From: Ylistrum balloti
Lineage: Eukaryota
Direction of reading: 5' to 3'
Assembly: GCF_031769215.1 (NCBI RefSeq)
Contig: NW_026782196.1
Coordinates: 682,001-746,000 of the forward strand
DNA: 64,000 bases
Shown here piece after piece: positions 820 through 21,600 of this stretch. The position numbers were made by a program, and so were the translations under genes. The notes beneath the pieces are model-generated. The model searched no databases. It was given only the letters and a program-made list of their open reading frames with translations, and was not told the origin of the DNA. Each line of letters opens with the position of its first letter. The stretch's first letter is position 1.

Positions 820-1100
820 ATGACAATGCCAAACCACACAGAGCCCACCAAGTACATAGCCATCTTCAACATGAAGTGACAGAGACGCCCCTATGGCCTG
901 CAAGGTCACCATACACGAACCCAACTGAGCATATCTCGGACTAAACGTCAGTGCACGATATCCAATTTGCCAACCAATTGGAAATTAGGGGCTGCATTGA
1001 TTCTGGAGTGCCAGAGTTTACCACGAAACAAGCTTAATTCGGCGTTTGGACACTGGGCACAAGAACTGTACCAAGAGCATGTGACTATACCCGATGATGA
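820..1100 (+). mobile_element. Tc1/mariner transposase remnant (C-terminal DDE region)
   Basis: ORF 732-944 ends DNAKPHRAHQVHSHLQHEVTETPLWPARSPYTNPTEHISD, matching the Tc1 pattern DNARPH...WPxxSPDLNPIEH.WD. It is followed by a stop and degenerate sequence. Confidence 0.7.
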
Positions 1101-1611
1101 AAGTTTTATACCAGTTTGATCAGTTAATCTTCTTAAACAATTAACTGGTTTTGGCGATTTGCTGACATATTAATTAGAGACAGTTTATGTCAAACTGTTG
1201 GAAAATGGAAATGAGCTTGACTTAAAAAAAAGGCAAGAAGCAGCGGTCCTGCTATAATGAAACATTGAAATATTATCATGTTCATTTATAAGAACAGAAC
1301 CAAGATCAGCGAAGTTTCGGCCGCTCATAATTGGTTTAAATAAGAACAGAGAATTGAAAGAAATGCAAAATGTCGCATTTCTGAAAATATCACCGGCAAA
1401 CGCTATGCTTGTAATTCTGCTGTTTTCTCGACTGTTTTTCTCGTCCAGACCGACTGTTAAAATGTCATGACAACGTCAGAATAATAAGGACTACAATGAA
1501 CGGAAAGACAATAGTCAGTTTAAACCATTGTTATAAAGATGTAAGTTTTCGATATGCTCTTATCAGTAATTGTACCTCACCATCACCGCAATCACAGTTT
1601 GAAATAAAACG

Positions 1612-1742
1612 TTTGATAGCGTCATTTTTGATGTTTCGGTTTTTTCCCTTCATTTTGATAGCGTCATTTTTGATGTTTCGGTTTTTTTCCCTTCATTTTG
1701 ATAGCGTCATTTTGGATGTTTCGGTTTTTTCCCTTCATTTCG
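1612..1742. repeat. Tandem repeat, about 42-43 bp unit x3
   Basis: Three copies of ttttgatagcgtcatttttgatgtttcggtttttttcccttca. Confidence 0.9.
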
Positions 1743-2480
1743 CTGAATTGGATTTTCGTAAAGAAAAAAAAAAAAATCAAAAGCAGCACTTTGGACTTTA
1801 GTTAAAGAGCTGGCCACGGTTGTTTAAAGGCTGGTATGTGATAACCAGTATTTCCGATATGAATTGAAGAAAATCGGAAAGATTCTTTATCATTTCACAA
1901 CTGTTGGTTTGTTGAGACAAGGCAGAGTGATTTATTTGAGTGTCAGTTTTGTATTGAATATTCTTGTTTGTTTAGTTGTAGCGATTTGAGATTTTTCACT
2001 GACAACTGGACTGGTTAACTTCCATATTACAATCATCGTATAGAAAATGTCAATTTATACGTTATAATTAGTATGTTTCGAGACAACCATAATAATCAAA
2101 TATCAAAATATTTACAAACATGCATTTTCAGGCATCTGAAACAGCAAGGGAAAGTAGAAAAATACAAATCCCTCTATCATACGTTTCTGATTTTACCTGG
2201 AATAGTTGACTATCAAGACTTGGTTAAAAGAAGATTTAACTATGCTGGCGGGCTAGTTTCTAGTACCCTGTAAATCATTACATTGGATTATTTTTTGTGA
2301 AATGTTATTTTTTTGTGAGTGTGAGGTCATTTTTAGACTTGAGTTGTCCACATCCAAAATTACTACATATATATAGCAACATCAGGATTAATCTTGAATT
2401 TGAACATGTATAAATTAGTACCAATGATAAGAACCTTCGGAAATAGTGACAGTTTATCTGCAAAAATCTAATACGACTAT

Positions 2481-4350
2481 AATAATAATAAATATAATAA
2501 TAATAATTGACTTTATTTAAGAGTCGATAACACTTTGAGTACAAGACCCTTCTAACAAGTGGTCGACGGTAAAATGTACAATATATACAACATTAAGATT
2601 ACAGCATCACATATGATATAAAAATCACAAATATCGAAGTAAACTAGCATAATCATGAAGGACTAAGATGTACATCAATAAAACAAATGTAATGATAGTG
2701 AAGAGGTATATAAAACGGTTATAGAGTGATTAATAATATAATAAAAGGACTAAATTAGCGAGGTTTTGTAAGGGATACAGGACTGATAATTAAAACAATT
2801 AATTGGTAACATTCATAAAGGTACCATATTATCTTAGGGCTAAAATAAGACTGGCATAAAAATGTGGATCTAGGTTAGTAAATTGGAGATGAATTTTTTA
2901 CAATAAAATTTAAAAGTTGGTAAGGTTCCACGTTGTCTGATATTTTCTGGAAGCTGATTCCACAAAGTTGGTCCAGTATATAGGAAGGAATTTCTAAACT
3001 TTTCAGTTTTGTGTTTAGGTATGATATAGTTACCAGCAGTAGATACTCTAGCTTGTCTACTGTGTACACTGAACACAAGCACATTACAGTCCAAGTAGTT
3101 AGGACACAGTTTGTTAGCTACTTTAAACATTAGTATACATTCATTGTAGTTCACTCTTTTGCTAAAAGGTAACCATTTGAGTTCGGTGAATAGTTCCCCT
3201 GATACAGAGTAGTCAGCATCCATAATTATACGTAAAACTCTTTTCTGTAATCTCTCTAGTTTTTTAATATGTGTCTGAGAACAATGTCCCCAAATATTTG
3301 AACAATAATCTAGGTAAGGTAGAATGAAACAGTTAAAATAGGTGATTCTTGATGAAACAGGTAAGAACTTTTTAATTCTGCATAACTGATATATTTTGAA
3401 ATTGACCTTTTTGATGACATCCTGGACATGTTCCAAGTAAGGGTATCATCAATACACACACCTAGGAATTTTTCATGTTTAACATTTTCCAACGTAAGAT
3501 CACCAGAATCAGTACATTCAATACATAATTCCTTTGATTTTTTTGTTTTTTTTTCTGTTTACTGCCTACAAGCATAACTTTGGCTTTGTCTGTATTTATA
3601 ATCATTTTGTTTGTTTTACACCAGTTTTTCACATTTACAAAGTCAGTGCGCAAACATGGGGTACACCAGTTGTAATTTCACAGGGATTACTTAAACTATT
3701 TTTGAAGGAAACAATCTGTAGGCGTTTTGATAAACAGGATGTAAAAAAAAATATGGCACTGTCTGAACATCCATATAATTTCATTTTTTGTAGAAGAATT
3801 TTGTGATCAACAATATCAAAGGCTTTTCTAAAATCAATATATATAACAACAATAAGCTTGCCTTTGTCCATTTCTTTGTACCATCTATTTGTCAAGGCTG
3901 TTAGAGCAGTCTGACAAGAACGTTTACATCTAAAGCCAGACTGATTTTCAATGAGTAGATTATGTTGGTTTAAAAATCATATAAAGACTAGTGTACATGT
4001 TTTTCTAAGATGTTTGATAAAACAGGTAAGATAGATATGGGTCTATAGTTACTAACCAAGCTTTTCTCACCCTTTTTGAAAATTGGATTTACTTTGGCAT
4101 GTTTGAAATTATCAGGGAACAAATTTTGATTAATACACATGTTTAGTTAAGTAGTAATAGACTCAGTCACAACATCAGCTGTCGTTTTTAATTACTTTGC
4201 AGAAATACCATCTAGCCCCGTGGCTTTGGTACAGTCAATATTCAACAGGAATTACTGTATAACAGTAACATCATTCTGCCTTCATTACAAAAATCCTGTA
4301 ATTAATACTAAGACAAAAGAGGGTTTAACAGCCCCACTATCTCAATTTTG
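2481..4350 (-). mobile_element. 5'-truncated L2/CR1-group LINE (RT pseudogene) with 3' UTR, AATAAA and (ATT)n tail
   Basis: Minus-strand motifs: KATGLDGISAK, AKVNPIFKKG..NYRPISILPVLS, IDFRKAFD.VDH.ILL, TGVP, KFLGVCID..LTW, ILPYLDYCSNIWG, RNSFLYTGPTLWNQLP. Several stops and frameshifts. The 3' end reads aataaagtcaattattattattatattt at about 2481-2520. Confidence 0.9.
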
Positions 4351-4424
4351 ATGAACTATAATGTGAATAGATAGAACTTCTTTTGGACAAAATAAGAAGA
4401 GAAACACTGCTATTTCAATTGTGT

Positions 4425-7229
4425 TCACTCGCTGACGTGTTGAAAGGCCCTTTCTACACAATCAGTTCCAAAGAAAGCCTCGAGTACATTGACCACCACC
4501 AGTTTGGCCGAACTGGCAAAGTTCTCGTGATTCTGTGACGCAAACTTGACCATCGAGTCAAGCCGGAAATCCACAAAAGTTAGGTTCTGATGCTCGAACT
4601 TGTCCTTGGGTCCACTGGTGAAGCGTGCCTTAATGTTTTCTGCACTGAGGCGGTGTTGTTCAGCTATCCTTTCATCAAGAAGATCAACAAAGCCACACAG
4701 GCCCCACTCGTGGTAGTCAAACTTTAGATATACTGTTGTCAGAGAAATGGCGTCCAGATCACTTCCGGTAAGCACTATTCCAATTTCCTCTTTCAAACCT
4801 CTTGCTGCTGTATTCACCAGATCGACGTAATGTTGACTGTTACGTAAACATTTGTCAGGAGATGACACGCTTTCCACTATCCCGCACGTGAACAAGCCCG
4901 GACTTGACATTGCCGATTTCCTCGACCTTTGGGTGAAGACAAATTTCTGAGGACACTCAGGTCCCTCATTGGTCAGAACAGCGACATGGAGACCGAATGA
5001 ATTGCTGTAAAAAGAACTGACTACACCCTTGCAGGGAACGGCCTCATCCTTTTCTCTATCGGAGAAGGACATCCATATGTCTCGCATTGTTCTGTGGTGA
5101 CAGTAAAGAGACTCCTGGAAGTGAAGGTTTATTGTTTGACATTCATTAATACCAGATCGAGAAAATGTCACCTTCTTCAGGGCAGCTAACACATTGTTGT
5201 CTATATCCTTCTTAGCTGCTAATTTTCTGTATTTTTCAGCGGTGCGTATGTACAGGTCTCTCTTTTCCATGTTCCATGAATCAGGTGCACCGGCTTCCGG
5301 TATATCACTAGTTTCTATTTCACATATCAACTGTGTATGATCATATCCTGCATTGCGAATCCCTGTGTTATAAAAGCCGCCTGGCTCAGAGCAGAACGAA
5401 TCAGCAACATAAATGTGTGTGTTTTTAAGGAATCCGAAAGAAAAATACTCAGCAATGGTAGGGTTATTTTCGTAAGGGTTGCTCTTGAACAGAAAATAAT
5501 CAGAATAAAGTTCTTCTGTTGTTGGCCTGTGGGACGGACAATGCTTCAAACATGATTCGATGACATCAAGAAGAGGACCACTTAAATCCTCAGGTATGGA
5601 TACAAAATCCCCAATGAATTGTTCGGAAGTGTCAAGTTTCTTCTTGAGATTAGCACTGTAGCTATACTCCTTTACTTTATCTTTCGATACTGACATATAG
5701 TTTTCGTCCTTGACCTGTCCGTCTTTCGTTTCATCATTCTCTATTCTCCCACCTTTCCGTACTACAGACATCAGTTGTCCAGTTGAAAGTTGATTAATCG
5801 CTTTTACTCCAGAGATTGCGTAGCCGGTAACCAACCCAAACGAGTAAATATCGCCGCGTTTGTAATCCTGAAGACTGAATGTAATGTCAGCTTTGCCCCT
5901 GAACACGAATTCAGGTGCTCCCCATCGCACATGTACGTATCCGCGCCGAGGTCCTTCTTGTAGGCCATAGTTACAGAAAGGACTTGCTGTTAGCTTTTCT
6001 ATACCACTACCCCAAGCAAGACCAAAATCGGCAACCTTGACCCTTAGTCTTGAAGGCCAAACCTCGACAAGGATGTTGTCGGGTTTTAGGTCTCTATGTG
6101 TGACATCGTTAGAATGTAGATAGGCAATTGCATGGAAAATTTGATTTGAAATATCCCAGGCATTGGCATAGCTGATCGGTCTCGTGCGCAAATACCCTAT
6201 CAGATTCATATCTACGTATTCCATAACAACGAACACTGCTATTCCGTGGCTGGTCAACTCTTGATGACGTACTTCCTTCGACTTTGGGCATAACACAGTG
6301 CGTGTTAAGCACGTTTGTACTTGTCCTGTTATCTCTTTGCGATCGGACGAGGTTGAGGACTGGTATATCCCAAAATGTCCTGTTTGTAGCTGTTCAACTG
6401 TGTGGTAATTTGAACTTATATGTTTCTTGACTTCTTGATGTGAATTTGTAGGATCTTTTTGAACATCAGTTGGTGCATTACCAGATGTTTGTGTATTTGG
6501 GATTAGTTTGTTTGGACTCTGTATTGAAGCTTCGTCAATATAACCTCTCGGATCAGAATTCCACGAGTCTCCCACATTGCACGGACTATTATCAGACATT
6601 GAGAAAGATTCTTTTGAATACAGTCCAGTGCCAGTCGCTACATCACTGTTGGAGAACGTCGAGTGCTCCGATGTTGAAACGCTTTTTGGATTAGTCACGA
6701 ATACGTCACTGTCGATATTTGACTGTGGCAAAATGTGGCCGGATGTAGAAGACACATTTTGTCCAGAACCTAAATCAATATTTGCCGAACTATCAACAAG
6801 TTGAATAACGTCATGATCCGACACCAACCCCATCCCTCGAAAGGCTACTATATTGTCATGGTGAAGCTCTCGGAGCAGATGACATTCTAAGAAGGATGAA
6901 CTGGCGCGGTCCTTTAATATTTTCACTGCAACGCGTGCTCCTTGAAGACGGCATTCATATACTTTTCCAAAGTTTCCTTCTCCTTTCAGTATCCAGTCAG
7001 AAAGCTGATGAGGACCAACTAAAGATGGTATTCTTGGTTTCGGAATGAGTTTTAGCAGTAAGAATAATTCATGAATTCGCGACTGCAACTCGCCTAAAAT
7101 AACCCCGCCATTAGACAGACTGATGGAGAAATTATCGTTCAAGGGACATAACTCTTCCAGGCTATCAAAAACGTCCCGAAGTCTGTGTAAACTGGCACGT
7201 ACACGGTTTTCTTGCTCCACCAGATCCAT
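4425..7229 (-). CDS. Intronless protein kinase - atypical Nudix (NUDT22-like) fusion protein, paralog A, 934 aa
   Basis: Single 934-aa ORF from ATG. Kinase motifs: GEGNFGKV, VAVK, HRDLKPDN, DFG, RWGAPE, DIYSFG. C-terminal domain: SNSFGLHVAVLT...FVFTQRSR...CGIVES...AARGLKEEIGI (Nudix-box-like). Collinear with the ORF at 13310-15466. Confidence 0.9.
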   Translation of the reverse strand: MDLVEQENRVRASLHRLRDVFDSLEELCPLNDNFSISLSNGGVILGELQSRIHELFLLLKLIPKPRIPSLVGPHQLSDWILKGEGNFGKVYECRLQGARVAVKILKDRASSSFLECHLLRELHHDNIVAFRGMGLVSDHDVIQLVDSSANIDLGSGQNVSSTSGHILPQSNIDSDVFVTNPKSVSTSEHSTFSNSDVATGTGLYSKESFSMSDNSPCNVGDSWNSDPRGYIDEASIQSPNKLIPNTQTSGNAPTDVQKDPTNSHQEVKKHISSNYHTVEQLQTGHFGIYQSSTSSDRKEITGQVQTCLTRTVLCPKSKEVRHQELTSHGIAVFVVMEYVDMNLIGYLRTRPISYANAWDISNQIFHAIAYLHSNDVTHRDLKPDNILVEVWPSRLRVKVADFGLAWGSGIEKLTASPFCNYGLQEGPRRGYVHVRWGAPEFVFRGKADITFSLQDYKRGDIYSFGLVTGYAISGVKAINQLSTGQLMSVVRKGGRIENDETKDGQVKDENYMSVSKDKVKEYSYSANLKKKLDTSEQFIGDFVSIPEDLSGPLLDVIESCLKHCPSHRPTTEELYSDYFLFKSNPYENNPTIAEYFSFGFLKNTHIYVADSFCSEPGGFYNTGIRNAGYDHTQLICEIETSDIPEAGAPDSWNMEKRDLYIRTAEKYRKLAAKKDIDNNVLAALKKVTFSRSGINECQTINLHFQESLYCHHRTMRDIWMSFSDREKDEAVPCKGVVSSFYSNSFGLHVAVLTNEGPECPQKFVFTQRSRKSAMSSPGLFTCGIVESVSSPDKCLRNSQHYVDLVNTAARGLKEEIGIVLTGSDLDAISLTTVYLKFDYHEWGLCGFVDLLDERIAEQHRLSAENIKARFTSGPKDKFEHQNLTFVDFRLDSMVKFASQNHENFASSAKLVVVNVLEAFFGTDCVERAFQHVSE

Positions 7230-7368
7230 GCTAGCTTTAGACCAGCTGAGTTTGCCTCACTGTATTTATGCGAATGTTCTCGGTAATACATTAAAAATAC
7301 AAATATGATAGTTCCATGTCCAGAAAAATCTCAGTGGAAAAGTACCTACACACTGCCATGCGGTATTC

Positions 7369-7376
7369 TGACGTCA
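7369..7376. promoter_or_regulatory. Perfect CRE palindrome TGACGTCA about 140 bp upstream of the paralog A start codon
   Basis: Exact 8-mer in a CpG-enriched stretch upstream of the ATG at 7229. Function is not demonstrable from sequence. Confidence 0.3.
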
Positions 7377-9311
7377 AGTTGTATGGCACATTTATGCGTT
7401 ATTGGTACGAAACATCTACTCGTCACTAGGTAACGTAAAAACGTATAACCAGAAAGTCAATGATTGAAATAGACGTATATAACTTGACTCGTTATCGCCT
7501 CATATATCCATGACTCATAAAGAAAATGCCTTGTTAAAAACCGGTTGTCGTTGACTGCACACACAAGTGACTTGATGATGTATTCAACTTGCATGCAAAA
7601 ATCATTTTTAATCTTGATTTTTGATACTCACGGAGGACAACACATGTTTATATTTCTGCATTATCTCCACACATCTCAAGTGTACACGCTCGGGTGATTT
7701 CCTATCCCAGTTTATACCAAAGGATTCTTTGATATAACAAGTGTTGATTTTATACGAGACGCCCTCTATTGCTACACATAATACTGTATTACACAAACTT
7801 CCTTACAGAACAATTTCCTTGATAGCTCATTTCGTATGTTGATAACTCAGGCGACATACTTTGAAAAAAAAAAAAAAAAACAACTACACATACACAACTT
7901 CCTGTGTACATAGTTGGGTTTATAATACATAAATGATTGAAATTGTTGACAGTATGACGTAATCTCATGAGAGTGCTTTATAAACACGGTATTCTGTTCA
8001 GAAATAAGTATCTGGGCAAGCCATCTCAGTTTTAGAAAGTGCATTATACATAAATAACTGAAAAGTTGGAGAGTTTTTGATAATGTACTTTTTTAAACAA
8101 TGCTGTCACCTGTTTCATAATAACATATTCACGAGCCCCTGTTGTTAAAGACAAAGGGCCTGTTTCCAGTAATGTTAATTCTCCATAGGAGCCTGCCCCC
8201 GTATAATTTCTTATCTAGCTCAACTACTGTTTTTTTCTTTTCCGAAAAATAATTTTACACCTTTCCGACACCCAGATTTCATAATTTCAGTGAAAATGTA
8301 TTTTTATAAAGTTGTCAATTTCAGCATCAAAGACATAAGTTCGTAAATAAAAGAAGGTTATCTCGAAATTGTAATTCGCAACATAGTATAAATTTCTTTT
8401 GATAAATATTTCCAAAACATCGTGTTTATTCATAAAACATAAAAAAAATATTCTCGGATGAAAATGCACTTGCAGAGACACAATTATGAAGAAAAACGCC
8501 ATAAATTTGCAATTTTCTCTCGTTATTTAGTTTTGGATGCAAATTTCCATCAGAAAATCGGATAGAGCTTTACTTGTTTCATATGTGTACCAAAAATCAG
8601 CTAATTCCATGTGGTGGAACGTTCTCATATCGCCGCCTGAATGTGGTTGTAAATTGAAAGAAAAGGGGAAATGAGTAACAACCTTGTCTGAAACCCTATT
8701 ATATAGCTTATTATATACAATATTGAATATCAGAGCGGATATTTTCATGACAGTTTTATGATGTGTAACGACTAAATAAATAGTATCGATATAAAGATTT
8801 ACACTGAGGACACCCTGATACATGAATACTGTTCTATCTCAAGCTGTCCTCTTCTGAATTTTCTGATCGTGTGGCCTTGTACATTTATCCGTATCTTCTT
8901 GTCTTTATCTATACGTTTACGAAATCATTCACTCGACGCTTGCTATTCTTGTCTCAATTTCCTTGTTTTATTGTCCCATCTCCAAAGGGTTGTGGCTCTG
9001 TCAGGGCTGGGACCCTGACTTGTCTCACTTTCTTTGTGCCTGCCGACCACGCCACATCGAATAGATAGATTATCCATATGAAATACTTTATTTTGTTCTA
9101 AGTAATCAATCAATTCTGCGCTTCTTGGAGGTATTGAATGTGATTTATCATATTGTCTTGTTATTTTGTGTAATTAGGTGTTCGTTATTTATCACACATT
9201 TTCGCATAATTGTACCAAACTACTAAGTATTAGCTGTTTACAGCAATCATCGGTGGCTTGCTATTTTGTTACTTTATCGACGCTTCATAAACCAATCTTT
9301 ATTGTTTCAAG

Positions 9312-10060
9312 ATGGAGGGTAAATGTGTTGGAGAAGAGTGTCAAGTGTACTTCAAGAAACGTAGTGGCAATAAGAACAGAAGTGCACGCAATGTAAATAG
9401 TCCACAATATAAATGGCTCCTAGATACGCTGGTGCAACAAGGATTGATGACAGCAAAGGAACAAGCATTTATTTGCCAGAAGTGCTACATGAAGTATCTT
9501 CGGAACAAAAATCAGCCTGAACCTGAACCCGAGCAGAACCAGGAAATAGAGGAGAAGACGACTCCCCGTCCCATATCCTGCCGTTGCTGACCCTTCATGA
9601 TCTTTTGAATGGATCATCTTCACACAAAAAATGCTGTCTCTGTCTTGTTACCTTTCCAAAAAATGGAACAAAATCATCAGTCTTACCAAAACGTGCAAGA
9701 CATCACCTGATCTATTCACACAAACTGTGGTGTCCCACCTCATCCCGCCTCTGCTCCATTCACCTTATTGGTAACGACTTAGATCCGTCTACAGAGGTTG
9801 TCCTTGATAGTAGAGGTTCCTTGGAATCTCAGTTACCATCAAAATCGTCCGAAATCATTAATGACCTCCTAGAGGTGTCGCACGTCCTTTCACAGAACCA
9901 GTCTGCGTTTACAATAAGCTTTTCTTCTCTTGATGACTCGGCATGCATGGCCTGGACAGGTTGGTCCAAAGATCAGTTCCTCGAAATCCACTCGCACTGT
10001 TCCCCATATCTTTCATCTGGTATATATACCAAGACTACACACGTTTTGGAAACCGGCCCT
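9312..10060 (+). mobile_element. Frameshifted, truncated N-terminal part of a DNA-transposon transposase, probably PIF/Harbinger-ISL2EU-like
   Basis: Two overlapping ORFs (9312-9590 and 9584-10117) with Cys motifs (ICQKC, SHKKCCLC, RLCSIHL) and a C..WTGWSKDQF helix-turn-helix-like motif that I associate with DDE_Tnp_4-family elements. No DDE triad is present. Confidence 0.45.
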
Positions 10061-12129
10061 TTATCTTTTATTTATCCATTTTTCATAGTTAATTTGCGAG
10101 TTATGGAACAAGTTTAGGAAGTGAGGTGTGGTATATATTGTTTAACGTCCTTTCAATAGCCATGTTTATCTAAAGGACGGTAAGCAGAGAGAGTTATGTT
10201 GTGGTGTTCACGGCGTCCTCCGATCGCCAACTTTTAATTATTACCTGCTTTCACGGTATGATAATTCCTGATGAATCTAGGAGGTCCATAGTCGACATAT
10301 ATAATCAGAATCCTTGAACTTCCATTTGTCGTTTCCTGATGAATTATTTGAATTAACTTTGAATGAAAACAATCTAACCTTGGTGAGATTCATGGTGTTT
10401 ATCGTAACTTCGACGTCACTAGGATCACAGATTTTAAATCTCCAATCAACTTCCTCTCACTGAGAAAGAAACCCATAGTTAGGATATTATGCAGGTAACA
10501 TGCTGGGATCAAACACAACAAAGTTAGTTCAATTGAATCTCCTTGACCTAGCTTCTAGCTTACAGAGGTCAAATGTATGAAAAAATCTTCAAACAACCTG
10601 CATTAACCAAGGTGCTGTGGTCATGATATTGTGCCAGTGGCATACTGGAACAAAGGTCAATCAAACTGGCTTACTTTCAAGGTCAAAGTGTCAAATGGAT
10701 AAAAACCTAGAACAAATTCTTCTTAGTGCCAACGATGTAATGAAGACTTTGAACAACTACGACCTAATTTCAAGATTACAAGAATCAAATGTAGCATTTA
10801 ATAACCTTTACAAAACCAAGAGGCACATTGTCATGATATAGGCCTGAATCTAACAGACTTCTAAGGGGTCTAATGAGTTAAATACCACTAACAACTTCTA
10901 AAATTCTAGAGACCAAACAACAAGGGTCATATTTGTCCAGTAGCATGCCAGGATGAATGACCTTTAAATTATTTTCAAAGTCATAAGGTTAAATGTGTTA
11001 AAAACTCTTAACAATCTTCTCCCAATAACCAAAATACCCAGACTGCTGATATTAAGCCAGTAACATGCTTGAAAGATTTAAATTTTGCTATAGCTACTTT
11101 GGCATCAATTTGATTAATTTTACAAATTAATGAAATCTTCAGAAACCCAATCAGAATTGAATTTACTCAGTGCATATATTCAAAATGCAATATAAACAAT
11201 AATGAAGATAGATGTATACATATTTGTAGGAATTTGATATTTTTTAAGTCAATTGAGAACTAGTATATTGCATGTTTCATTTTTGTGAAAAGTTCATATT
11301 ATGAAATATCAATACCAACATGTGCATTACTATGAAACTGGTTAAGTATCATAAAGCAACTTAATTTTTTTTAGTGAATAGCCAACAATAGTGACAAGAA
11401 AAAGACTACAGGGATATTAATAACATGATATAAAAATGTGCACATAACATGTAAAAAAAGTTAAAATATTGACAGAAAACATTGTACATACACAATAATT
11501 TCAGAGTTCATTTGTCTGATGACTATTGTATAACGCATTGCATTACTACAGAGCATTGAGTATCATTCTCCCTTAATGGTTCGGACGGAAGTGCTTGAAG
11601 GTCCAGAAACCATAGAAACACACAGTCAAATTCATACATCTTAATGTCTGACCAGAGAACTGAACACCAGTTATCTTTGTGAGAGGCAAGTGCTTAACCA
11701 TTCATGTGCCTTCCTGCCATCCAACATGGATAATAAACACTGGCCAGCATAAAAATAAAAATGTGAACGTGAAGAGAATGTTGTCATATTCTGGGAAAAT
11801 ACTATAAATTCATATATATCTTGGTAGGGCTAATAGTTTATGGTTTCTCAATATAAATCAATTTACTGACATTTGAGTTTTTGAATAAATAGCACAATAC
11901 CCACTGGGACCAATATCCATTTTATTTTCACACCTTTATCATTTCAAACCAGGAAGTAACAAATTTGTATGCTAAGAGTAAGAAAGAAAATCAGGCAAAG
12001 GAAAGCACATAAAAAAAGCACAACAAAGATAACAAATATGTTAATATACAGTACTATGTAAATGAATGTTCAGATATTGTGTAAGTAATCTTTACAAAAA
12101 ATATTTCATGTGTCTTAATGTTGTGTATT

Positions 12130-12900
12130 CTATGTCAGAGGCCTGCAGAGCCTGTATCACCTGGCCTTGATAAAGCAAAAGAAATTCTAAAGAAAAGTCA
12201 GAAAAAGTGTTTTAAAGAATTTGCTCTATTTCACCTATTAGGCCTTTTTCAATTCTTTTCAACTTTAAGATGTTTCAAACCAACTGGGAGACAGAATCCT
12301 TACATTCCTAAAGAAGAGGAAGAATTTTAAAGAATTTGTTCTTTTTCATTATTGGGCCTTGCCCCTCATTCCCAAGGAGGCCAATAGCTACATTTTATAA
12401 CAAAAAAAAATAAAAATATTCAGTCACCTTCACCAAAGTATGTTTCAGTCTAAACTAGGACAAAATATATGCATTCCCACTAAAGAGGAAGGATTTTAAA
12501 GAATTTACTCCACTACATGTGCCTTAATGTTGCACATGTAAGAGGTCTACAGTATTTGCTGTATTTCCTTAGGGGACTGAAACCCACTGTTTATATAAAT
12601 CTTAGACCCCTTCAACAAAGGATGTTTCAGATCTTTTATGAAAAATAATTTGTGCTGGATATCTTCTTTTGAATCCTGCCCCTAGGATTCCAAGAAGTCA
12701 GACCCATCATTTATAGAAAAAAACACAACATAGTCCTCTTCACCAAATAGTGCTTCTGACCAAATTTGGTAAAAATCCACTTGATCGTTCATGACTAATA
12801 GTGATTTGTAGTACAAGTTGACAAAAGGACAACAGCCATTGTAGTATTCTATATACGTACTTGACTCTACAGTCTGGTGTCCTTATCAAGAAGAAAACTC
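12130..12900 (-). mobile_element. Degenerate non-autonomous repeat with internal tandem units (HINE/Helentron-like); similar remnants at about 10500-11170, 25150-25420 and 31300-31540
   Basis: Recurring ggaagaattttaaagaattt blocks about 150-200 bp apart, with degenerate terminal motifs. Confidence 0.4.
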
Positions 12901-13309
12901 CCTATACAATATATCACAGTCAGGTACTGTTGATTGTCACCATCATCTCATTAGTGACCTGAAAGTTGGATATTGGCACTGAAGTATGATATTTCAGAGT
13001 GCAAATAGGTACATATAACTTATGAGAAGAGTACTTCATAAGACTAAAATATTACATGTAAACTAGACTGATTACACAAATACAAACAGATAACAATGTA
13101 GAAATTTTGGACACCTAAACCACTGGGTATAATCACTATCTTCAGTATGTCTTCTTAGTATTTTGAAAATTCTTGAAATTTTAAAGCAAAATTACTTTTT
13201 TTCTGAGTATATAAACAACCGGTATACAATTTGTTGTGGAGTATTACATTTTAATCACATCAATATTTGGAATAAGAATTAGAAGCCAGACTGTGACACT
13301 AAGAACCAC

Positions 13310-15466
13310 CTATAAATCTTGGTTAAACTTTTGGTGTACTTTATCACTCCCAAAGAACGTCTCCAATACCTTGACCACCACTAGTTTGGCAGAACTAGCA
13401 AAGTTCTCATGATTATTTGACACAAATTCAACCATAGGCTCCAACTCAAAGTCCACAAAAGTCAGTGTCTGATGCTCGAACTTGTCCTTAGGTCCACTGG
13501 TAAAGCGCCCCTTGATGCTTTCTGCACTGAGGCGATGCTCCTCTGCTATCCGCTCATCCTTCAGGTCAACAAAACCACACAGACCCCACTCATGGAAATC
13601 AAACTTGAGGTATATGGTCATCAAGCAAATGGCATCCAGATCATTCCCTGTCAATTCCAGACCAATTTCCTCCATTAATCCTCGAGCCGCTGTGTTGAGT
13701 AGATTGACATATGTTTCACCTTCAATATTAACATAGTCAGGTTTGGAGACACTTTCTACAGCCCCACATGTAAAGTTACCTGGGCTTGACATGCCTTTTC
13801 TTCTAGCTCTTTGGGGAAATACAAATTTCTGTGGCTTATCTGGACCCTCATTGGTTAGAATAGCAACATGGAGCCCAAATGAATTGCTGAAGTATGGATG
13901 GACATCTCCTTTGCATGGAACTTCCTGATTCTTTTCTGAAGGAGAAAGTGACATCCAAATTTCTCGCATGCTGCGATGATGGCAATAGTCAGACTCCTTG
14001 AAATTGAGAGCAATGGTTTGTTTTTCATCTTCTCCAGGTCTTGCTAACACCAAGCCTTTCAGTGCTGATGTTGGATTGTTGTCTATCTCTCTGCTCTTGG
14101 CCATCTGTAGATATTTTTGTAGACAATCCTGGTACTGTGCTATCTCCTCTTCTGTCCACTGGATATGTGGGTCTCGATACGGTGCACCCTCTGTTTCTAT
14201 CTTACATATCAGATTGTTGTGGTCATATCCTGTTGGTCTTTTTCTGTTGGGTGATTCTAAGTACCCAAGTGTTGCATCATCTTCCCCTATATAGGAATCT
14301 GCCACAAATATATCTGTTTTCTCCATGAATCCACACGAGAAAAATTCCACTTGTGTGGGGTCAATCTGGTATGGATTTTTATCCACTGAGAAATATTCTG
14401 CCAATAGATGTCTAGCACTTTTCCTTGCTTCTGGATCATGTTGAACACATGTTTCTATAGCAGCTCGTAGAGTCCCTTCCAAAGATTTTGGTAACTTCAC
14501 AGGGTCATCGTCTGATTCATCAGATTCTGATGAAAGACATGATGATGATATGTTGGCCAAAGCTTTCACTCCAGTGAGTGTGTAAGTCATCACCAGTCCA
14601 AATGAATACATATCTCCTTGTTTGTAATCTGTGATATCATATTCCTTTTCCCCATATCTGGCAAACTCTGGGGCTCCCCATCGGATGTTTAAGTAGTACG
14701 AACTCATCCCTCGTGTTGTTGATCCTGAAGGTCTGACATATTCTGTTTCATTTGCTTCCCCCTGACTGTACCATGCAAGTCCAAAGTCTGCTACTTTCAC
14801 CAAGATTCGGCTAGGCCCCACTTCTATGAGAATGTTGTCTGGCTTCAGATCTCTGTGAACCACATCCAGAGAGTGGAGGTAGGATAATGCGCTGCATATC
14901 TGCTTTCCGACACTCCAAGTCTGACTCTCTGTTAGTCCATGTCTTTCATGTGTTTCCAAATCCCTGATGTACTGGAACAAGTTCTTGGACATGAACTCCA
15001 TTACAAGAAACATATGTTGATCTTCGTCTATCACGGAGTTTTCAGATCGTGAAATCTGGCCTAGTTCCTTTCCAGTCATATAACCCATCCCGCGATATGC
15101 CACGATGTTATCGTGACTCAAGTAACGAAGTAAGTCTGACTCCCTGAACTTAGTCTTAGCTTGTTCTTTCAGTGTTTTAACAGCCACTCTAGATCCATTC
15201 AGTTTACACTCAAAGACCATTCCAAAATGACCCTCACCGAGGAATTTTTTATCGGTCAAACTCCTTGATGTGACGCAGGCGATGGATGAAGATTTATTTG
15301 CTAGTTGAAGCAAATCTTTCACGTGGTCGTAAACTGTACTTACGGCTATTCTTACTTCTTTTACTGTTGTTTCCAGATTTTCACTTATTCCTGAAAACTT
15401 ATTCACAAGTTCATTAATCGATCGAAAACATTCTTTAAGTTGTTCTGATCGAGTGTCTGGATCCAT
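13310..15466 (-). CDS. Intronless protein kinase - atypical Nudix (NUDT22-like) fusion protein, paralog B, 718 aa from the ATG
   Basis: The ORF-track start at 15481 is a TTG; the first ATG is at 15466 (MDPDTRSEQL...). Kinase motifs: GEGHFGMV, VAVK, HRDLKPDN, DFG, RWGAPE, DMYSFG. C-terminal domain: SNSFGLHVAILT...FVFPQRAR...CGAVES...AARGLMEEIGL...DKFEHQTLTFVDF. Confidence 0.9.
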   Translation of the reverse strand: MDPDTRSEQLKECFRSINELVNKFSGISENLETTVKEVRIAVSTVYDHVKDLLQLANKSSSIACVTSRSLTDKKFLGEGHFGMVFECKLNGSRVAVKTLKEQAKTKFRESDLLRYLSHDNIVAYRGMGYMTGKELGQISRSENSVIDEDQHMFLVMEFMSKNLFQYIRDLETHERHGLTESQTWSVGKQICSALSYLHSLDVVHRDLKPDNILIEVGPSRILVKVADFGLAWYSQGEANETEYVRPSGSTTRGMSSYYLNIRWGAPEFARYGEKEYDITDYKQGDMYSFGLVMTYTLTGVKALANISSSCLSSESDESDDDPVKLPKSLEGTLRAAIETCVQHDPEARKSARHLLAEYFSVDKNPYQIDPTQVEFFSCGFMEKTDIFVADSYIGEDDATLGYLESPNRKRPTGYDHNNLICKIETEGAPYRDPHIQWTEEEIAQYQDCLQKYLQMAKSREIDNNPTSALKGLVLARPGEDEKQTIALNFKESDYCHHRSMREIWMSLSPSEKNQEVPCKGDVHPYFSNSFGLHVAILTNEGPDKPQKFVFPQRARRKGMSSPGNFTCGAVESVSKPDYVNIEGETYVNLLNTAARGLMEEIGLELTGNDLDAICLMTIYLKFDFHEWGLCGFVDLKDERIAEEHRLSAESIKGRFTSGPKDKFEHQTLTFVDFELEPMVEFVSNNHENFASSAKLVVVKVLETFFGSDKVHQKFNQDL

Positions 15467-15635
15467 GACGATCAAATTCAATTTACTCTCAAAACGAAAG
15501 TAGAAAATTCGGAACGCTTCTATATCGCGATCTTACAGTTCGGAACATATCGGATGCTTTGATAATAGTCGTATATTTTTTGACAGCTTCAGTTCAATCT
15601 GAGGTCAAGGTTAATGCACTTGCACTCGTGTTAGC
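15467..15635. promoter_or_regulatory. Bidirectional promoter shared by kinase-Nudix paralog B (-) and GBE1 (+)
   Basis: Only 169 bp separate the two divergent ATGs, and the interval is CpG-rich relative to the window. It contains an IRF-element-like AAAACGAAAGT at about 15491-15501. Confidence 0.7.
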
Positions 15636-18600
15636 ATGGCCGGTGATGGACGTAATACTTGTGATGTTCCTGAGATCGAAAAACTGTTTGACATCGATCC
15701 AAACCTGAGAAATGTCGAACAAGAAATCAGGAGAAGGTATTATTATGACGATGATTTTGATAGCTTTCAAATAGCACGTGTTAAATGAGTGACAGCGGCA
15801 TTCAGTAGCTAATTGCTTTGCACGTGTGCCGTAAGTGCATGAGGCATGTATGAGGTTATGTCGGTCTATCCACTTTGGCATGTATAAAAAAATTCAAGAA
15901 ATGATAATACAACTGCACTGCATTGAAAATATATGTTGATATATATTCATTATTATTGTAACAAACTCCTGTTGTCTCTCACTCTGAGAATATGTTGTGT
16001 GTCGAGGAAAATTTCAAATTGACATTTCTGAATAATCAGCAATTAACCCTAGTGATTAATATTGTTGATTAAATCATCCTCTTTATATAGATACATGTTC
16101 TTATACATACATATTTCCATTGCATGTTTAGTCCAGTATCCTATCACATCACTTTGGAATGACATACAATTAACCTAAGTTGGAGTTATCTGATTTTGTT
16201 CCGGATTCACTTCTTTTGAAGCTTGAGCATGGAAGGTCATTGGTTTATGTTGAAGGCCAGGAGTTTACCTTTGAATAGGTAACTGGGGTGTGAACAGGGA
16301 GGCTGGGAAAAGCAGGACACAGCAATTGCTGACTGTCAATTATATACATGTAGATTTGATAATGGTTTTTAGCTGTTACATTATGATGTATTTTATAAAA
16401 TTATTTTGACCTCTGGCCACAGTTTGTCTGTGTGACACAGTTTTTCCATGTGACACAGTTTGTCTGTGTGACACTGTTTGTCCATGTGACACAGTTTGTC
16501 CATGTGACACTGTTTGTCCATGTGACACTGTTTGTCTGTGTGACACAATTTGTCCATGTAACACTGTTCGTCTGTTTGTCCTTGTTACACTGTTTGTCCA
16601 TGTTACACTGTTTGACTGTGTGACACTGTTTGTTCATGTGACACAGTGTGTCCATGTGACACCGTCTGTGTGACACAATTTGTCCTTGTAACCCTGTTCG
16701 TCCGTTTGTCCTTGTTACACTGTTTGTCCATGTTACACTGTTTGTCTATGTGACACTGTTTGTCCATGTAACACTGTTCGTCCGTTTGTCCTTGTTACAC
16801 TGTTTGTCCATGTTACAATGTTTGACTGTGTGACACTGTTTGTCCATGTGATGCAATTTGTCCTGTGGACACTGTTTGTCCATGTGACACTGGTTGTCCG
16901 TTTGTCCATGTGACACTGTTTGTCCTTGTGACACAGTTTGTCAGTGTGACACTGTTTGTCCTTGTGACACAGTTTGTCAGTGTGACACTGTTTGTCCTTG
17001 TGACACAGTTTGTCAGTGTGACACTGTTTGTCCTTGTGACACAGTTTGTCAGTGTGACACTGTTTGTCCTTGTGACACAGTTTGTCAGTGAGACACTGTT
17101 TGTCCATGTGACACTGTCCTTGTGACACAGTTTGTCAGTGTGACACTGTTTGTCCTTGTGACACAGTTTGTCAGTGTGACACTGTCCTTGTGACACAGTT
17201 TGTCAGTGTGACACTGTTTGTCCTTGTGACACAGTTTGTCAGTGTGACACTGTTTGTCCTTGTGACACAGTTTGTCAGTGTGACACTGTTTGTCCTTGTG
17301 ACACAGTTTGTCAGTGTGACACTGTTTGTCCTTGTGACACAGTTTGTCAGTGTGACACTGTTTGTCCTTGTGACACAGTTTGTCAGTGTGACACTGTCAG
17401 TGTGACACTGTCCTTGTGACATTGTTAGTCTGTGTGACAGGATTTGTCCATGTGACACTGTCCTTGTGACACAGTTTGTCAGTGTGACACAGTTTGTCAG
17501 TGTGACACTGTCCTTGTGACACAGTTTGTCAGTGTGACACTGTTTGTCCTTGTGACACAGTTTGTCCATGTGACACAGTTTGTCCATGTGACACTGTTTG
17601 TCCTTGTGACACAGTTTGTCAGTGTGACACTGTTTGTCCTTGTGACACAGTTTGTCAGTGTGACACTGTTTGTCCTTGTGACACAGTTTGTCAGTGTGAC
17701 ACTGTTTGTCCTTGTGACACAGTTTGTCAGTGTGACACTGTTTGTCCTTGTGACACAGTTTGTCAGTGTGACACTGTTTGTCCTTGTGACACAGTTTGTC
17801 AGTGTGACACTGTTTGTCCTTGTGACACAGTTTGTCAGTGTGACACTGTTTGTCCTTGTGACACAGTTTGTCAGTGTGACACTGTTTGTCCTTGTGACAC
17901 AGTTTGTCAGTGTGACACTGTTTGTCCTTGTGACACAGTTTGTCAGTGTGACACTGTTTGTCCTTGTGACACAGTTTGTCAGTGTGACACTGTTTGTCCT
18001 TGTGACACAGTTTGTCAGTGTGACACTGTTTGTCCTTGTGACACAGTTTGTCAGTGTGACACTGTTTGTCCTTGTGACACAGTTTGTCAGTGTGACACTG
18101 TTTGTCCTTGTGACACAGTTTGTCAGTGTGACACAGTTTGTCAGTGTGACACTGTCCTTGTGACACAGTTTGTCAGTGTGACACTGTTTGTCCTTGTGAC
18201 ACAGTTTGTCAGTGTGACACTGTTTGTCCTTGTGACACAGTTTGTCAGTGTGACACTGTTTGTCCTTGTGACACAGTTTGTCAGTGTGACACTGTTTGCC
18301 CTTGTGACACAGTTTGTCAGTGTGACACTGTTTGTCCTTGTGACACAGTTTGTCAGTGTGACACTGCTAGGTTTTATTAAAGAGGCTTATAATTGCCTCT
18401 TTCTGCTTTGCAACATTGTTAAGTATAAAACAAGTATGAGAGTTTAGTTCTGGAAGTTTGGTTTGTAGCTATGTTGGATTGTGATGTAAGAGAGGGTTTT
18501 TATCCTCTATTGGTGAGAGTGATGGTGCCTGCTGCTCATATGAACAGTTACATAGGATTCTTAATACAGCAGTCAAAAACTAAGGATTGGTGTTGAATTT

Positions 18601-21600
18601 TATTTCTTGATGACTCATTCTAACATTATCTAAACACAGGTGTAGTGACAGGTGTCTGATGGTAACTTGGAAGATAAGGTGTAGTGACAGGTGTCTGATG
18701 GTAACTTGGAAGATAGGGTATAATGACAGTTGTCTGATGGTAACTTGGAAGATAGGGTGTAGTGACAGGTGTCTGATGGTGACTAGAAAGATACCTACCA
18801 AAGAACTTCTTAATATATGCTTAATAAGGAGATTTTATGTTACATCAGTGGTGTTTTTTTATGGTTATTAGGCATGCATAATTATAAAAGATATACTTCA
18901 GCATGATAGTATACAATAGTGTACAGTAATGAAAGCCTATACTATATATAGACTTCCTTTCCATGATGATGAAGTTTAATAGACACACATTTCAGCCCCA
19001 ACTCGCTTTAAAATCATGTTATTATTATTTTTAAGGTATGGATGCTTCCAGAAAATTATCAATGATATCAGCCAGTCTGAAGGAAGCTTGGAGAAATTTT
19101 CTCTGGGTTATGAGATTTTCGGAATTCACAGAACGGCAGACAATGGGATTAACATGACAGAATGGGCACCAGGAGCAGAGGGCATCTACCTAAGAGGAGA
19201 CTTCAGTCAGTAACTTAAACAATTATTAGTTTAAATTTTGTTTATAAAAGGCAGAGAAATAATTGTTACCTGTGATTTTAGGGTTTGTTGCTAAAAGTTG
19301 TAAGGTTCACTGGAAAAGTCTGTTTGATTACATTTATTTGTATAATATTTGAAATATTCAATTTTGATGTTGTGTCTGAATTTGTTTCCATGAAATGAAA
19401 TGGGGCATTTGTGGCCCAAAATCTTAACCTAAAAACTACATAGTATCGAAAGTATTTTGTATTTCTTCAATTAAGGTTAAGCATATGGCAGCTATTAGAC
19501 GAAACATATTCAAACTCAGATTTTTGTTGTAAGAATGAGTCTGTTTTAGATGACTGGAACCAGACGGAGTATCCATTTACCAAAGGAGAATTTGGAAAAT
19601 GGCATTTAACACTGCCCCCTAAACCTGATGGCTCATGTCCAATACCCCACAACAGTAAAATCAAGGTAATTAAACTTTTGTAATATAGATAGACAAAATT
19701 CAAGACAAGAAGTTTGAAAGTCCAACATCATAAGGTGTAGACACTTCATTAAGATTTTATTTTCTGTGACCTGACAACCATCCATCATTTTTTTCTTTTT
19801 ATGGAAACTGTGGATCAATCTTTCACAAATTTTGTTGTTTGTCCTTTGTCAAAATTATTAAAAGAAATAGTATATTTGTATGTTCAACAAAACATCATTT
19901 TTGATTTGGTTTCTTAAACGGTTTGCAGTGTTCAACAGTTAGAAGAATTTGTTGTTTTGACAAGTAAATATATAAAATATAAACTTTATTTATTCTAAAA
20001 ATAATTGTGAAACAAGCTATTAGCTTATATTAAATCACTCATGTCAGCCCAGATGGAAGCATAAGGGGGTCTTACTATTGGAGAAAACCACAGTACCAGG
20101 GGAATACCTGTGTGATTTGGCAGGTGACCTTTTCAAATACATTTGGGGAATAAAACCTGAGATGGCTAGGTAAAAGGTGAATGTGTTACACACTGAATCA
20201 CACGACCAACTAGCGGCCTGGTAAAATGTGGTCAACTGGACTAGTAATAGAAAATGTATGCATAGAGGACTCCTATGTAGTGTATCAGACTTTAATTCAG
20301 CCAAGTTCAGTTGTGAATATATTGTCCATACGCATTGGACATTTTGCGAAAGCTGTTACCAACAGTCAGTTTACTTAATGTTAGCACCTTCAGTCTATCA
20401 TACCTATTTACATTAATTCCTAGCTAAACAGTAAACCAGTTATAAAGGATTTCCAGTGATAGAGCTAATGTAAAAACATGGCAGAGAGGGTTATATTTTG
20501 GGACAAATTAGGGGATATTTTAATTAAACAAAAAACACACATAACATATAGAAATACTTGCTAAATATCAATTTAATTACTGTTTTCTTTCAAATCGGAT
20601 GTCTCATGACCACGGTCTTTGTTTTTCTTTAGTTGTTTGATAAAAAGAAATTTTATTTTTGGCTGAGCCATTGTCATTAGGGAAACTTGGACGTCCCCAT
20701 TTCACTAAGAGATAACCTGTAACACTGAAATGCTGTTACAGTACCACAGTATGCAATCATAGTTAAAGAAACGCTTTTTCCATCTTAGTTTTTACAAACT
20801 TACAAGTTGACATTTTGTTGTTTTACACAACAATGTCACACAAAAGGAATGCATAATAACCAATTGATAGCTAGACAGTTGACATCAGAGGTACATGAAA
20901 TTACATGAAAAGGTATACTTGTTATATGTATTAGTTGCCAGTGAAAGATAACTTATCTGTTGGCAAATTCTACTCATCAGGATGAGTGCTTTTGCCAGGT
21001 CTTGCTTTACTTTTCAAATTTCTCGGAAGTTATGGAGGACCTTTCCAAAAAAAAATTCTAGGTATGTCTTAGGTGCCTTATTAGAAATGAAGTTTCACAC
21101 CTTTATATTTGATAATGATTGTAGGAACTAGATAACTAACACAGGGACCATCTTGGATTTAGATTTTTAAACTAAGGAAAGAATCATCACAAAACATTAT
21201 AGACAAGTAAAGGATTCCCAATGGTTCCTGCTACTGTTTGAACTTCGTTAATTATCACAAACTACCAAAAATTACCATTTGGAATTTAGGAAAATTCTTT
21301 ACATATCAGAAATCTAGATTAAAACCTTCATACTAAGAAGGTACCATTATAAATGTCAGGAAAGGAAAAATTCAGGAGAAAGAAAAGAAAGTATGACTTT
21401 TATTTAGAACAGAAATTAGATCTTAAGTGTTAGGTGTCCTAATTCCTTATAGGCTGGTTTCATTCTACTCTAACTTTCTGTTCTACTCTACACTATAAAA
21501 CTGTTGTGTAAATTTTTGTTGACAGCTAGTGATTCGTACCAAGTCTGGAGAACTTGTGGACCGCCTTAGTCCATGGGCCAACTATGTTGTGAGACAGGAA

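Follow-up and report, generated by a model that had tools for sequence, protein, structure and literature searches.

A 64,000-nucleotide stretch of the genome of the scallop Ylistrum balloti (positions 682,001 to 746,000 of contig NW_026782196.1, assembly GCF_031769215.1; here referred to as the window) carries two neighboring genes, A and B, whose products of 934 and 718 amino acids (aa) share a three-part architecture: a short helical N terminus, a protein kinase domain, and a C-terminal domain that is predicted to be a two-lobed Nudix domain of the NUDT22 type. An earlier note on this DNA had reported both open reading frames (ORFs) and their common architecture, and the ORF listing places them where that note did. 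The two scallop genes are functional tandem duplicates of an old metazoan family in which all three parts reside in one polypeptide. They are real and constrained, because the ORFs are intact, Pecten has the same tandem order, and the ratio of nonsynonymous to synonymous substitution rates (dN/dS) in the structured parts is 0.03 to 0.20. Both domains are of known kinds; their combination appears to be undescribed. The earlier note knew of no described animal kinase with a C-terminal Nudix domain, and a literature search likewise found no published description of the kinase-Nudix architecture or of these genes, and nothing relevant on NUDT22 together with a kinase or on TIR and Nudix domains in defense.

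A NUDT22-like C-terminal domain

This domain is not recognized by simple sequence searches. A Pfam scan at E values of up to 10 finds no family, NUDIX included, in the C-terminal region of either A or B. A single-sequence phmmer search of the PDB yields only a chance match to ornithine carbamoyltransferase and does not find NUDT22, and sequence searches of the PDB with two bacterial homologs give no match. An AlphaFold model based on an alignment of 43 homologs (A1) has a predicted local distance difference test score (pLDDT) of 94.8 and a predicted template modeling score (pTM) of 0.92. It consists of an N-terminal lobe (residues ~1 to 136) and a Nudix-type lobe (residues 150 to 339). When this model is compared with the PDB by Foldseek, six chains of human NUDT22 come out on top (E values of 3e-13 to 1e-12 over ~330 columns), with template modeling scores of 0.62 by query and 0.71 by target and with both lobes covered. 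The next Nudix structure trails by seven orders of magnitude, with an E value of about 3e-6. At E values below 1e-3, the search finds more than 90 Nudix chains of the PDB, which gives a positive answer to the fold check that the earlier note had proposed. The VIA-align superposition on NUDT22 has a Z score of 22.7, with 271 of 282 residues aligned at a root mean square deviation of 3.5 (model residues 3 to 328 on chain residues 1 to 290), whereas other Nudix and isopentenyl diphosphate (IPP) isomerase (IDI) structures reach Z scores of 10 to 14.3 and cover the Nudix lobe only. Among Swiss-Prot models, the leading matches are NUDT22 of four mammals and NUDX9 of Arabidopsis, a nucleotide-sugar enzyme. 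A protein-language-model search separately returns a cluster named “NUDT22-like.”

The likeness extends to the sequence level when the whole family is taken into account. A profile of 84 bacterial and animal family sequences (alignment A3) matches NUDT22 (PDB 5LOR) with an E value of 6.3e-9, compared to 0.22 for the 43-sequence profile; the Pfam NUDIX model weakly matches 13 of the 84 relatives. The earlier note had paired five motifs of the scallop domain with motifs of NUDT22. Three of these pairs are recovered by HMMER: the significant stretch of the A3 alignment contains FDAPKFRLHS..LGLTSY and ADPLGVGAALAT..LVFLRRS..PG, and a second, weak stretch contains LTSEQVRKHYLSGGPEAHES..FVE. For the two remaining pairs, the Nudix helix and FASSAK, only the structural alignment provides coverage. 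Judged from the model and the profile, the domain is a two-lobed Nudix domain of the NUDT22 type, as the note had supposed.

This module is unlikely to be a NUDT22 ortholog. Its identity to NUDT22 is about 15%, as opposed to 20 to 33% to bacterial modules. A stand-alone “NUDT22-like” protein of a sea anemone forms its own fold cluster, so that a cnidarian holds a separate NUDT22-like protein, which argues against orthology. The AlphaFold database cluster A0A6I9YF19 contains a 475-aa “2'-phosphotransferase” with a NUDT22-like domain at residues 2 to 268; NUDT22 and TRPT1 are neighboring genes in vertebrates, so this may be a read-through model.

Conserved residues of the Nudix lobe

Across the 84 members of the family, R174 and R216 are invariant and Y115, E192, D198, E220, E221, D282, and E285 are conserved in at least 90% (domain numbering, to which 379 is added to obtain the numbering of B). 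In the 30 metazoan members, R595, G596, L597, and E599 (B numbering) are invariant. The pattern R216-[GA]-U-x-E220-E221-x-G-U falls on the model helix 210 to 222 and corresponds to the REUXEEXGU half of the Nudix box, with the first Glu replaced by Gly or Ala. The complete canonical box, GX5EX7REUXEEXGU, is absent. The scallop proteins contain G-x2-E-x23-R-G-L-x-E-E-x-G-L instead, with a spacer of 23 rather than 7 residues, and even in this noncanonical form, R, EE, G, and U are kept.

Because the metal-binding Glu pair and additional acidic residues are kept from bacteria to animals, the module is probably an active Mg2+-dependent pyrophosphatase. On the same residues, Mg2+-dependent hydrolysis of UDP (uridine diphosphate)-glucose or UDP-galactose would be plausible. 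Human NUDT22 itself lacks a conventional Nudix box and was inactive in a screen of 52 substrates (PMC5688067). According to the statement in PMC12847042 that cites Carter et al. 2018, it hydrolyzes UDP-glucose and UDP-galactose.

The kinase domain and the N-terminal helices

The kinase domains of A and B contain every catalytic motif that the earlier note had listed, namely, GEG[HN]FG, VAVK, the αC Glu, HRDLKPDN, DFG, RWGAPE, and D[MI]YSFG. In B, these include GEGHFG at residues 77 to 82, K97, E109, HRDLKPDN at 204 to 211, DFG at 227 to 229, and RWGAPE at 262 to 267. The Pkinase domain (Pfam ID PF00069) is recognized in B with an E value of 1.3e-39 over residues 72 to 357 and in A with an E value of 5.6e-30, in two stretches that are split by an insert. 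Residues K97, E109, D206, N211, and D227 are retained in 28 or 29 of the 30 aligned metazoan members, and the kinase looks catalytically competent.

As a single sequence, the kinase matches PDB kinases with a best E value of 1e-15, shared among GSK3, Src, and GCN2, with no close relative. The profile of the 30-sequence metazoan alignment (A2) places CTR1 (E value of 2e-36), TYK2, and RAF at the top of solved structures; EGFR and ULK1 follow within a few bits of CTR1 and RAF, and Src, Abl, JAK, and BRAF match alike in a structure search. The best profile matches, together with the HRDLKPxN signature of Ser/Thr kinases, make the domain similar to the tyrosine kinase-like (TKL) group, which includes RAF, CTR1, MLK, IRAK, and RIPK; the lack of a close PDB relative for the single scallop sequence sets it apart from them. 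We know of no TKL family that carries a Nudix domain.

The short helical N terminus noticed in the earlier note consists of two helices in the full-length AlphaFold model, where their pLDDT is about 80. Sequence conservation of this region between phyla is poor (5 to 26% identity).

Phyletic distribution in animals

A search scored on the C-terminal region only, with full-length size limits, yielded 68 proteins, nearly all of which combine the kinase with the module. The search for this architecture across metazoa that the earlier note had suggested thus finds the fusion from a sponge to amphioxus and tunicates. It is present in mollusks (scallops, mussels, oysters, Pinctada, Solemya, Haliotis, and a chiton), Lingula, three species of Branchiostoma, a hemichordate, three tunicates, many corals and anemones, and the sponge Oscarella. 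No vertebrate members are among the homologs recovered. More than 60 full-length homologs have one common domain order. In the source databases, they are named “uncharacterized” or after unrelated kinases, and one fragment has been automatically named “Nudix hydrolase domain-containing.” Lineage-specific expansion of paralogs is seen in Mytilus, oysters, and corals. In Branchiostoma floridae (locus L004), a Death-domain gene with a weak SH2 match (898 to 5888) lies directly upstream of the kinase-Nudix gene (10001 to 18188), in the same orientation.

The module is always the best conserved part of these proteins. Outside scallops, it shows 49 to 67% identity, versus 29 to 48% for the kinase. 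The paralogs A and B are likewise most alike in the C-terminal domain (61% identity), followed by the kinase (48%) and the N terminus (29%).

Both catalytic sets are intact in 26 members of the 30-sequence alignment, and the other four have decayed Nudix motifs. Catalytic residues of both the kinase and the Nudix box have been lost in P0030 (Saccostrea) and P0063 (Exaiptasia), whereas the losses in P0032 (Mytilus) and P0049 (Porites) are mainly in the Nudix motifs. These four proteins might represent pseudoenzyme evolution, and the joint loss in two of the four gives a small hint that the kinase and Nudix activities are coupled.

Gene structure and selective constraint

The description of the genes as single-exon holds for bivalves, whose copies are intronless, but does not extend to the family as a whole: the genes of Nematostella (9 exons) and Branchiostoma (~13 exons) are interrupted and span both domains. 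Fourteen contigs of ~2.5 kb from different runs of the coral Montipora contain the whole uninterrupted ORF with short flanks and are transcript-like, and an ORF from a sponge-like Trinity transcriptome (P0056) also includes both domains. These relatives provide indirect evidence that the kinase and the Nudix domain are on one mRNA. A sequencing run presented as RNA for Y. balloti was set aside, as its uniform 9- to 11-fold depth and contigs that cross intergenic DNA identify it as genomic DNA.

Orthologs of B in Pecten, Argopecten, and Mizuhopecten are 83 to 86% identical to it (83% overall in Pecten maximus). The P. maximus ortholog of A is a 65% identical ORF (L001, 16465 to 19353) on the same strand, ~4.3 kb downstream of the B ortholog. 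As Pecten has both genes in the same order, the tandem duplication predates the split of these scallops. In comparisons with Pecten, dN/dS is 0.09 to 0.20 in all three parts of B and 0.03 to 0.18 in A outside the kinase insert, and both genes are under purifying selection. The insert, a Ser/Thr-rich segment found only in A, has a dN/dS of 0.46; Pecten A carries an insert at the same site that is only 36% identical.

Bacterial homologs and their fusions

When 1.84 billion representatives were searched exhaustively with phmmer, 187 proteins were retrieved at E values of ≤1e-3. Those beyond the animal clade show 20 to 33% identity (phmmer E values of 1e-29 to 1e-6), and many are stand-alone proteins of 350 to 470 aa. 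The earlier note had likened the domain to atypical actinobacterial Nudix proteins as well, and homologs are indeed found in Streptomyces, Actinomadura, Micromonospora, and their relatives. Other members have an N-terminal TIR domain (P0116, P0122, P0133, and P0202), an N-terminal caspase domain (P0151 and P0163), or, outside metazoa, an N-terminal protein kinase domain (P0080, P0142, P0153, and P0164, the last one from the jakobid Andalucia). Shape searches add fusions with HTH_31, fusions with TIR, Hexapep, and GMPPB_C, and a 1,271-aa “PkwA” Ser/Thr kinase whose C terminus carries the module. A Pfam scan of the A3 members gives one HTH_31/HTH_3 match and one PilZ match.

In species-representative genomes, a scan detected 47 loci, which belong to Streptomyces, Actinomadura, Micromonospora, Amycolatopsis, Kutzneria, Actinoplanes, Ktedonobacteria, and others; a genome scan with P0153 as the sole query gave no match. 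Of the 10 longest ORFs tested at the 47 loci, 9 have a caspase domain at the N terminus, and an ORF of Kitasatospora has a TIR domain there. In three contigs, the gene for the P0163 caspase fusion is directly preceded by an EACC1 gene. The EACC1-caspase pair is known as the two-gene “System 4” (Kaur et al. 2020, PMC7159879); there, the variable domain that follows the caspase on its C-terminal side is interpreted as an effector. A NUDT22-like module was not found named in the text of that paper, whose sole mention of Nudix is generic. Bacterial P0163 thus has the composition of this system; the scallop genes have neither EACC1 nor caspase and share the module only.

The P0116 TIR fusion (bacterial genome GCA_022842825.1) adjoins a TIR-TM defense candidate and a BrnT/BrnA toxin-antitoxin pair. 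At this locus (L007, 6389 to 9560), the TIR-NUDT22-like gene overlaps by 1 base with a 282-aa gene, which is followed by the TIR-TM defense candidate. The 282-aa protein shows no similarity to the module family and has no detectable family of its own. This cluster might be an uncharacterized defense operon. In PADLOC, the TIR and kinase partners of the module match ThsB, PDC-S66, PD-T4-6, and mad6.

In a quick, unrooted maximum-likelihood tree of 84 modules, the animal modules form one clade, with a Shimodaira-Hasegawa-like approximate likelihood ratio test (SH-aLRT) support of 99, within which the A and B modules cluster together (SH-aLRT of 95 and 99). Three of the four nonmetazoan kinase-fused members fall into the 19-row subclade that includes the animals (SH-aLRT of 86 to 87), whereas TIR fusions appear at four places in the tree and caspase fusions at two. 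The scallop kinase matches the kinase of P0080 with 89 bits and the best PDB kinase with 61 bits. Taken together, this points to an older branch of the module that is linked to kinases, with moderate support in a tree that is unrooted.

Genes and genomic neighborhood

The coordinates of the two genes, their domains, and the adjacent gene are listed in Table 1. There are no assembly gaps in the window. The ORF of gene A is intact and starts with ATG. The mechanically called ORF of gene B (13310 to 15481, minus strand) begins with a TTG codon 5 codons upstream of the ATG at 15466; the latter is taken as the start, because scallop orthologs start at the same MDPDTR sequence.

Table 1. Features of the Y. 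balloti window (positions in the window; aa, residues of the respective protein)
Feature	Positions	Strand	Description
Gene A	4425..7229	-	Intronless paralog coding sequence, 934 aa plus stop; architecture as in gene B
A, NUDT22-like Nudix domain	4428..5450	-	aa 594-934; box CGIVES 782-787 ... RGLKEEIGI 810-818
A, Ser/Thr-rich low-complexity kinase insert	6240..6827	-	aa 135-330, ~195 aa, between N-lobe and hinge
Gene B	13310..15466	-	Intronless coding sequence, 718 aa plus stop; N-terminal helices, kinase, NUDT22-like Nudix domain
B, two-lobed NUDT22-like Nudix domain	13313..14347	-	aa 374-718; N-lobe ~380-515, Nudix lobe ~530-718
B, modified Nudix box	13658..13768	-	C567-G-A-V-E571 ... D577 ... 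23-aa spacer ... R595-G-L-M-E599-E600-I-G-L603
B, protein kinase domain	14381..15268	-	aa 67-362; Pfam Pkinase
B, N-terminal two-helix hairpin	15269..15466	-	aa 1-66; helices 3-22 and 29-56 (AlphaFold full-length model)
Glycogen branching enzyme gene, segment with the ATG	15467-15738	+	Divergent from gene B
Branching enzyme exons	~19031-19210, 19540-19668, 21523-21651, 21942-22088	+	
Branching enzyme exons	~22233-22343, 23807-24043, 24524-24667, 24973-25116	+	

Gene B is arranged head-to-head with a glycogen branching enzyme gene, whose ATG is at 15636, leaving 169 bp between the two start codons. The same arrangement is present in P. maximus, where the neighbor has CBM_48 and Alpha-amylase domains. 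The oyster ortholog has no called gene within 10 kb, and the amphioxus and Nematostella orthologs have neighbors other than the branching enzyme. As this synteny is pectinid specific, a functional tie to the branching enzyme was set aside; the link is probably lineage-specific synteny and incidental.

Other features of the region include a 177-aa ORF between genes A and B (9584 to 10117, plus strand), which lacks a Pfam match and probably does not represent a gene. Downstream of B, at ~12200 to 12780, contig depth in the genomic run rises 2- to 20-fold with many alternative joints, probably because of a dispersed repeat or transposon fragment. A minisatellite of ~2 kb (16418 to 18366; ~110 copies of an 18-bp unit, 78% matches) lies inside intron 1 of the branching enzyme gene, and the ORFs of 331 and 215 aa at 17171 to 18166 are spurious products of this repeat.

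Relation to known systems

Human NUDT22 (PDB 5LF9, 5LOR, and 5LOU) shares with the scallop domain the two-lobed fold, consisting of an N-terminal lobe and a Nudix lobe, and the motifs NG/DAPK, ..SY.., FGV..A..TaD..lvF.RRS....PG, and GG.(D/E)..E. The Nudix boxes of both are noncanonical (PMC5688067), the scallop version RGLxEExGL being nearer to the canonical REUXEEXGU than the NUDT22 helix as given in the earlier note. In contrast to the scallop proteins, NUDT22 is a stand-alone enzyme of ~300 aa and has no kinase domain.

The bacterial conflict-type modules are direct homologs with the same constellation of Arg, Glu, and Asp residues, and they are likewise located C-terminally to a signaling or effector domain. 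They differ in being prokaryotic (from filamentous Actinomycetota and Ktedonobacteria) and in having mostly caspase or TIR partners rather than a TKL-like kinase.

Two animal proteins offer analogies. ALPK1, reportedly the cytosolic receptor kinase for ADP (adenosine diphosphate)-heptose, resembles the architecture proposed for the scallop proteins in that a nucleotide-sugar-binding domain and a kinase are combined in one polypeptide with a sensor function in innate immunity. The resemblance is one of logic and not of homology: ALPK1 consists of an alpha-kinase and a helical ligand-binding domain instead of a eukaryotic protein kinase and a Nudix domain, and it is not known to hydrolyze its ligand. 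TRPM2 carries a C-terminal NUDT9-H domain, that is, a Nudix domain fused to a signaling effector as a module for ADP-ribose, which belongs to the nucleoside diphosphates linked to another moiety (NDP-X). The Nudix domain of Nematostella TRPM2 is reportedly still an active hydrolase that removes the ligand. Here, an ion channel rather than a kinase serves as the effector, and the Nudix domain is of the NUDT9 rather than the NUDT22 type.

Functional interpretation

The structural and homology claims of the earlier note are well supported. Its functional proposal, a kinase that senses a nucleotide sugar or nucleotide messenger or else a kinase-controlled hydrolase acting in metabolism or immunity, remains inferential, so that the interpretation as a whole is partly supported. 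We infer that binding or hydrolysis of NDP-X is coupled to kinase signaling, with the module as either its sensor or its effector. At a probability of about one-half, the favored reading is that of a ligand-gated signaling kinase with a coupled NDP-X-hydrolyzing module and a role in stress or innate immunity. The C-terminal module would bind NDP-X in the cleft between its N-terminal and Nudix lobes and hydrolyze it in an Mg2+-dependent manner, the candidate ligands being hexoses or heptoses linked to UDP, guanosine diphosphate (GDP), or ADP, or else an ADP-ribose-type molecule. Occupancy or turnover of the ligand would be coupled to the kinase in cis, probably through oligomerization of the N-terminal helices and trans-autophosphorylation, and the protein would act as a ligand-gated signaling kinase with a built-in off-switch. 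The most likely setting would be stress or innate-immune signaling rather than housekeeping metabolism.

The coupling of the kinase and the Nudix domain is supported by the conservation of the fusion, the multiexon genes that span both domains, the high conservation of the module, the joint decay of both catalytic sets in two of the four decayed members, and the subclade that three of the four nonmetazoan kinase-fused members share with the animals. A role in conflict or immunity is favored over housekeeping metabolism because the bacterial module has TIR, caspase (next to EACC1), and Ser/Thr kinase domains as fusion partners. From the same fusions, coupling to a signaling or effector domain looks like a recurrent theme, of which the animal family may be the kinase-linked branch. 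A bolder and quite tentative version would make these proteins cytosolic receptor kinases for a danger or pathogen signal of the NDP-sugar or ADP-ribose type, built from a module of the caspase, TIR, and kinase conflict systems of multicellular bacteria, already present in the metazoan ancestor, and representing an independent invention similar to ALPK1, with hydrolysis serving as a timer.

Several observations weigh against the favored reading. The full-length model has a pTM of only 0.52 and provides no confident interface between the kinase and Nudix domains. The Nudix box is noncanonical, so hydrolysis is not assured. PADLOC has no model for the NUDT22-like module, and the immune part of the reading is drawn entirely from domain context. 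A Death-kinase-Nudix fusion in Branchiostoma belcheri (P0041), which might have served as evidence of an immune role, was rejected as a probable merged prediction: residues 1 to 384 correspond to the Death/SH2-like gene that lies separately upstream in B. floridae, and the first two exons of the kinase gene are skipped. Finally, the C-terminal domains of the EACC1-caspase systems are regarded as effectors, not sensors, an analogy that would fit a Nudix module acting as the output.

If the module is indeed the output, it would deplete NDP-X compounds such as UDP-sugars, NAD+, or ADP-ribose and be turned on or off through phosphorylation by the kinase after an upstream signal; it would be a eukaryotic counterpart of the bacterial effectors used by caspase, TIR, or Ser/Thr kinase partners. 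Its position in Streptomyces-type proteins, where the variable effector domain is expected, would agree with such a role, as would the catalytic-type residues conserved in the 84 members and the slow evolution of the module, the slowest in the protein. We nevertheless consider it unlikely, as a single, constitutively tethered kinase would be an unusual means of hydrolase control and neither a phospho-acceptor site nor an interface was identified, the full-length model having a low pTM. A purely metabolic enzyme, namely, a NUDT22-like pyrophosphatase of UDP-glucose and UDP-galactose with a kinase attached, which would control glycogen or nucleotide-sugar metabolism and be coregulated with the branching enzyme, could be imagined from the reported activity of NUDT22, the nucleotide-sugar enzymes among the best fold matches, and the head-to-head gene pair of Ylistrum and Pecten. 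That pairing is not found in oyster, amphioxus, or Nematostella, the identity to NUDT22 is low, and a cnidarian has a separate stand-alone NUDT22-like protein; the paralog expansions in Mytilus, oysters, and corals and the TIR and caspase contexts in bacteria are better explained by conflict systems, which leaves this explanation with rather poor prospects.

The Nudix-like domain might also be a noncatalytic interaction or scaffold module for the kinase, similar to TIRR/NUDT16L1. TIRR and syndesmos are among the weaker fold matches, and the noncanonical box, like that of NUDT22 with its inactivity on 52 substrates, would be in line with this possibility. Noncatalytic Nudix proteins usually lose metal-site residues, whereas at least 90% of the 84 sequences retain R216, E220, E221, E192, D198, D282, and E285, a pattern typical of a metal-dependent active site and one that makes a pure scaffold improbable. 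That the genes are artifacts (chance ORFs, pseudogenes, or two genes read as one) might be suspected because only DNA runs were found for Y. balloti and because P0041, a related model in the databases, probably merges two genes. Such an error is hardly credible, given 718 and 934 open codons in DNA of ~40% G+C, dN/dS far under 1, more than 60 full-length homologs in one domain order, multiexon genes that span both domains, and the coral contigs and sponge-like transcriptome ORF that carry the whole ORF.

If the ligand-gated reading is correct, these genes would define an unstudied ancient signaling family in the animal kinome, in which a kinase is hard-wired to a hydrolase of the nucleotide-sugar or ADP-ribose type. 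They would provide a third example, after TRPM2 with its NUDT9-H domain and ALPK1, of signaling proteins that read NDP-X metabolites directly. The family ties animal genes to modules of bacterial conflict systems, which include caspases with EACC1, TIR domains, and Ser/Thr kinases, and bears on the origin of innate immunity. It also represents a large uncharacterized NUDT22-like family with clear catalytic-type residues, which places NUDT22, an outlier among the human Nudix enzymes, in an evolutionary context.

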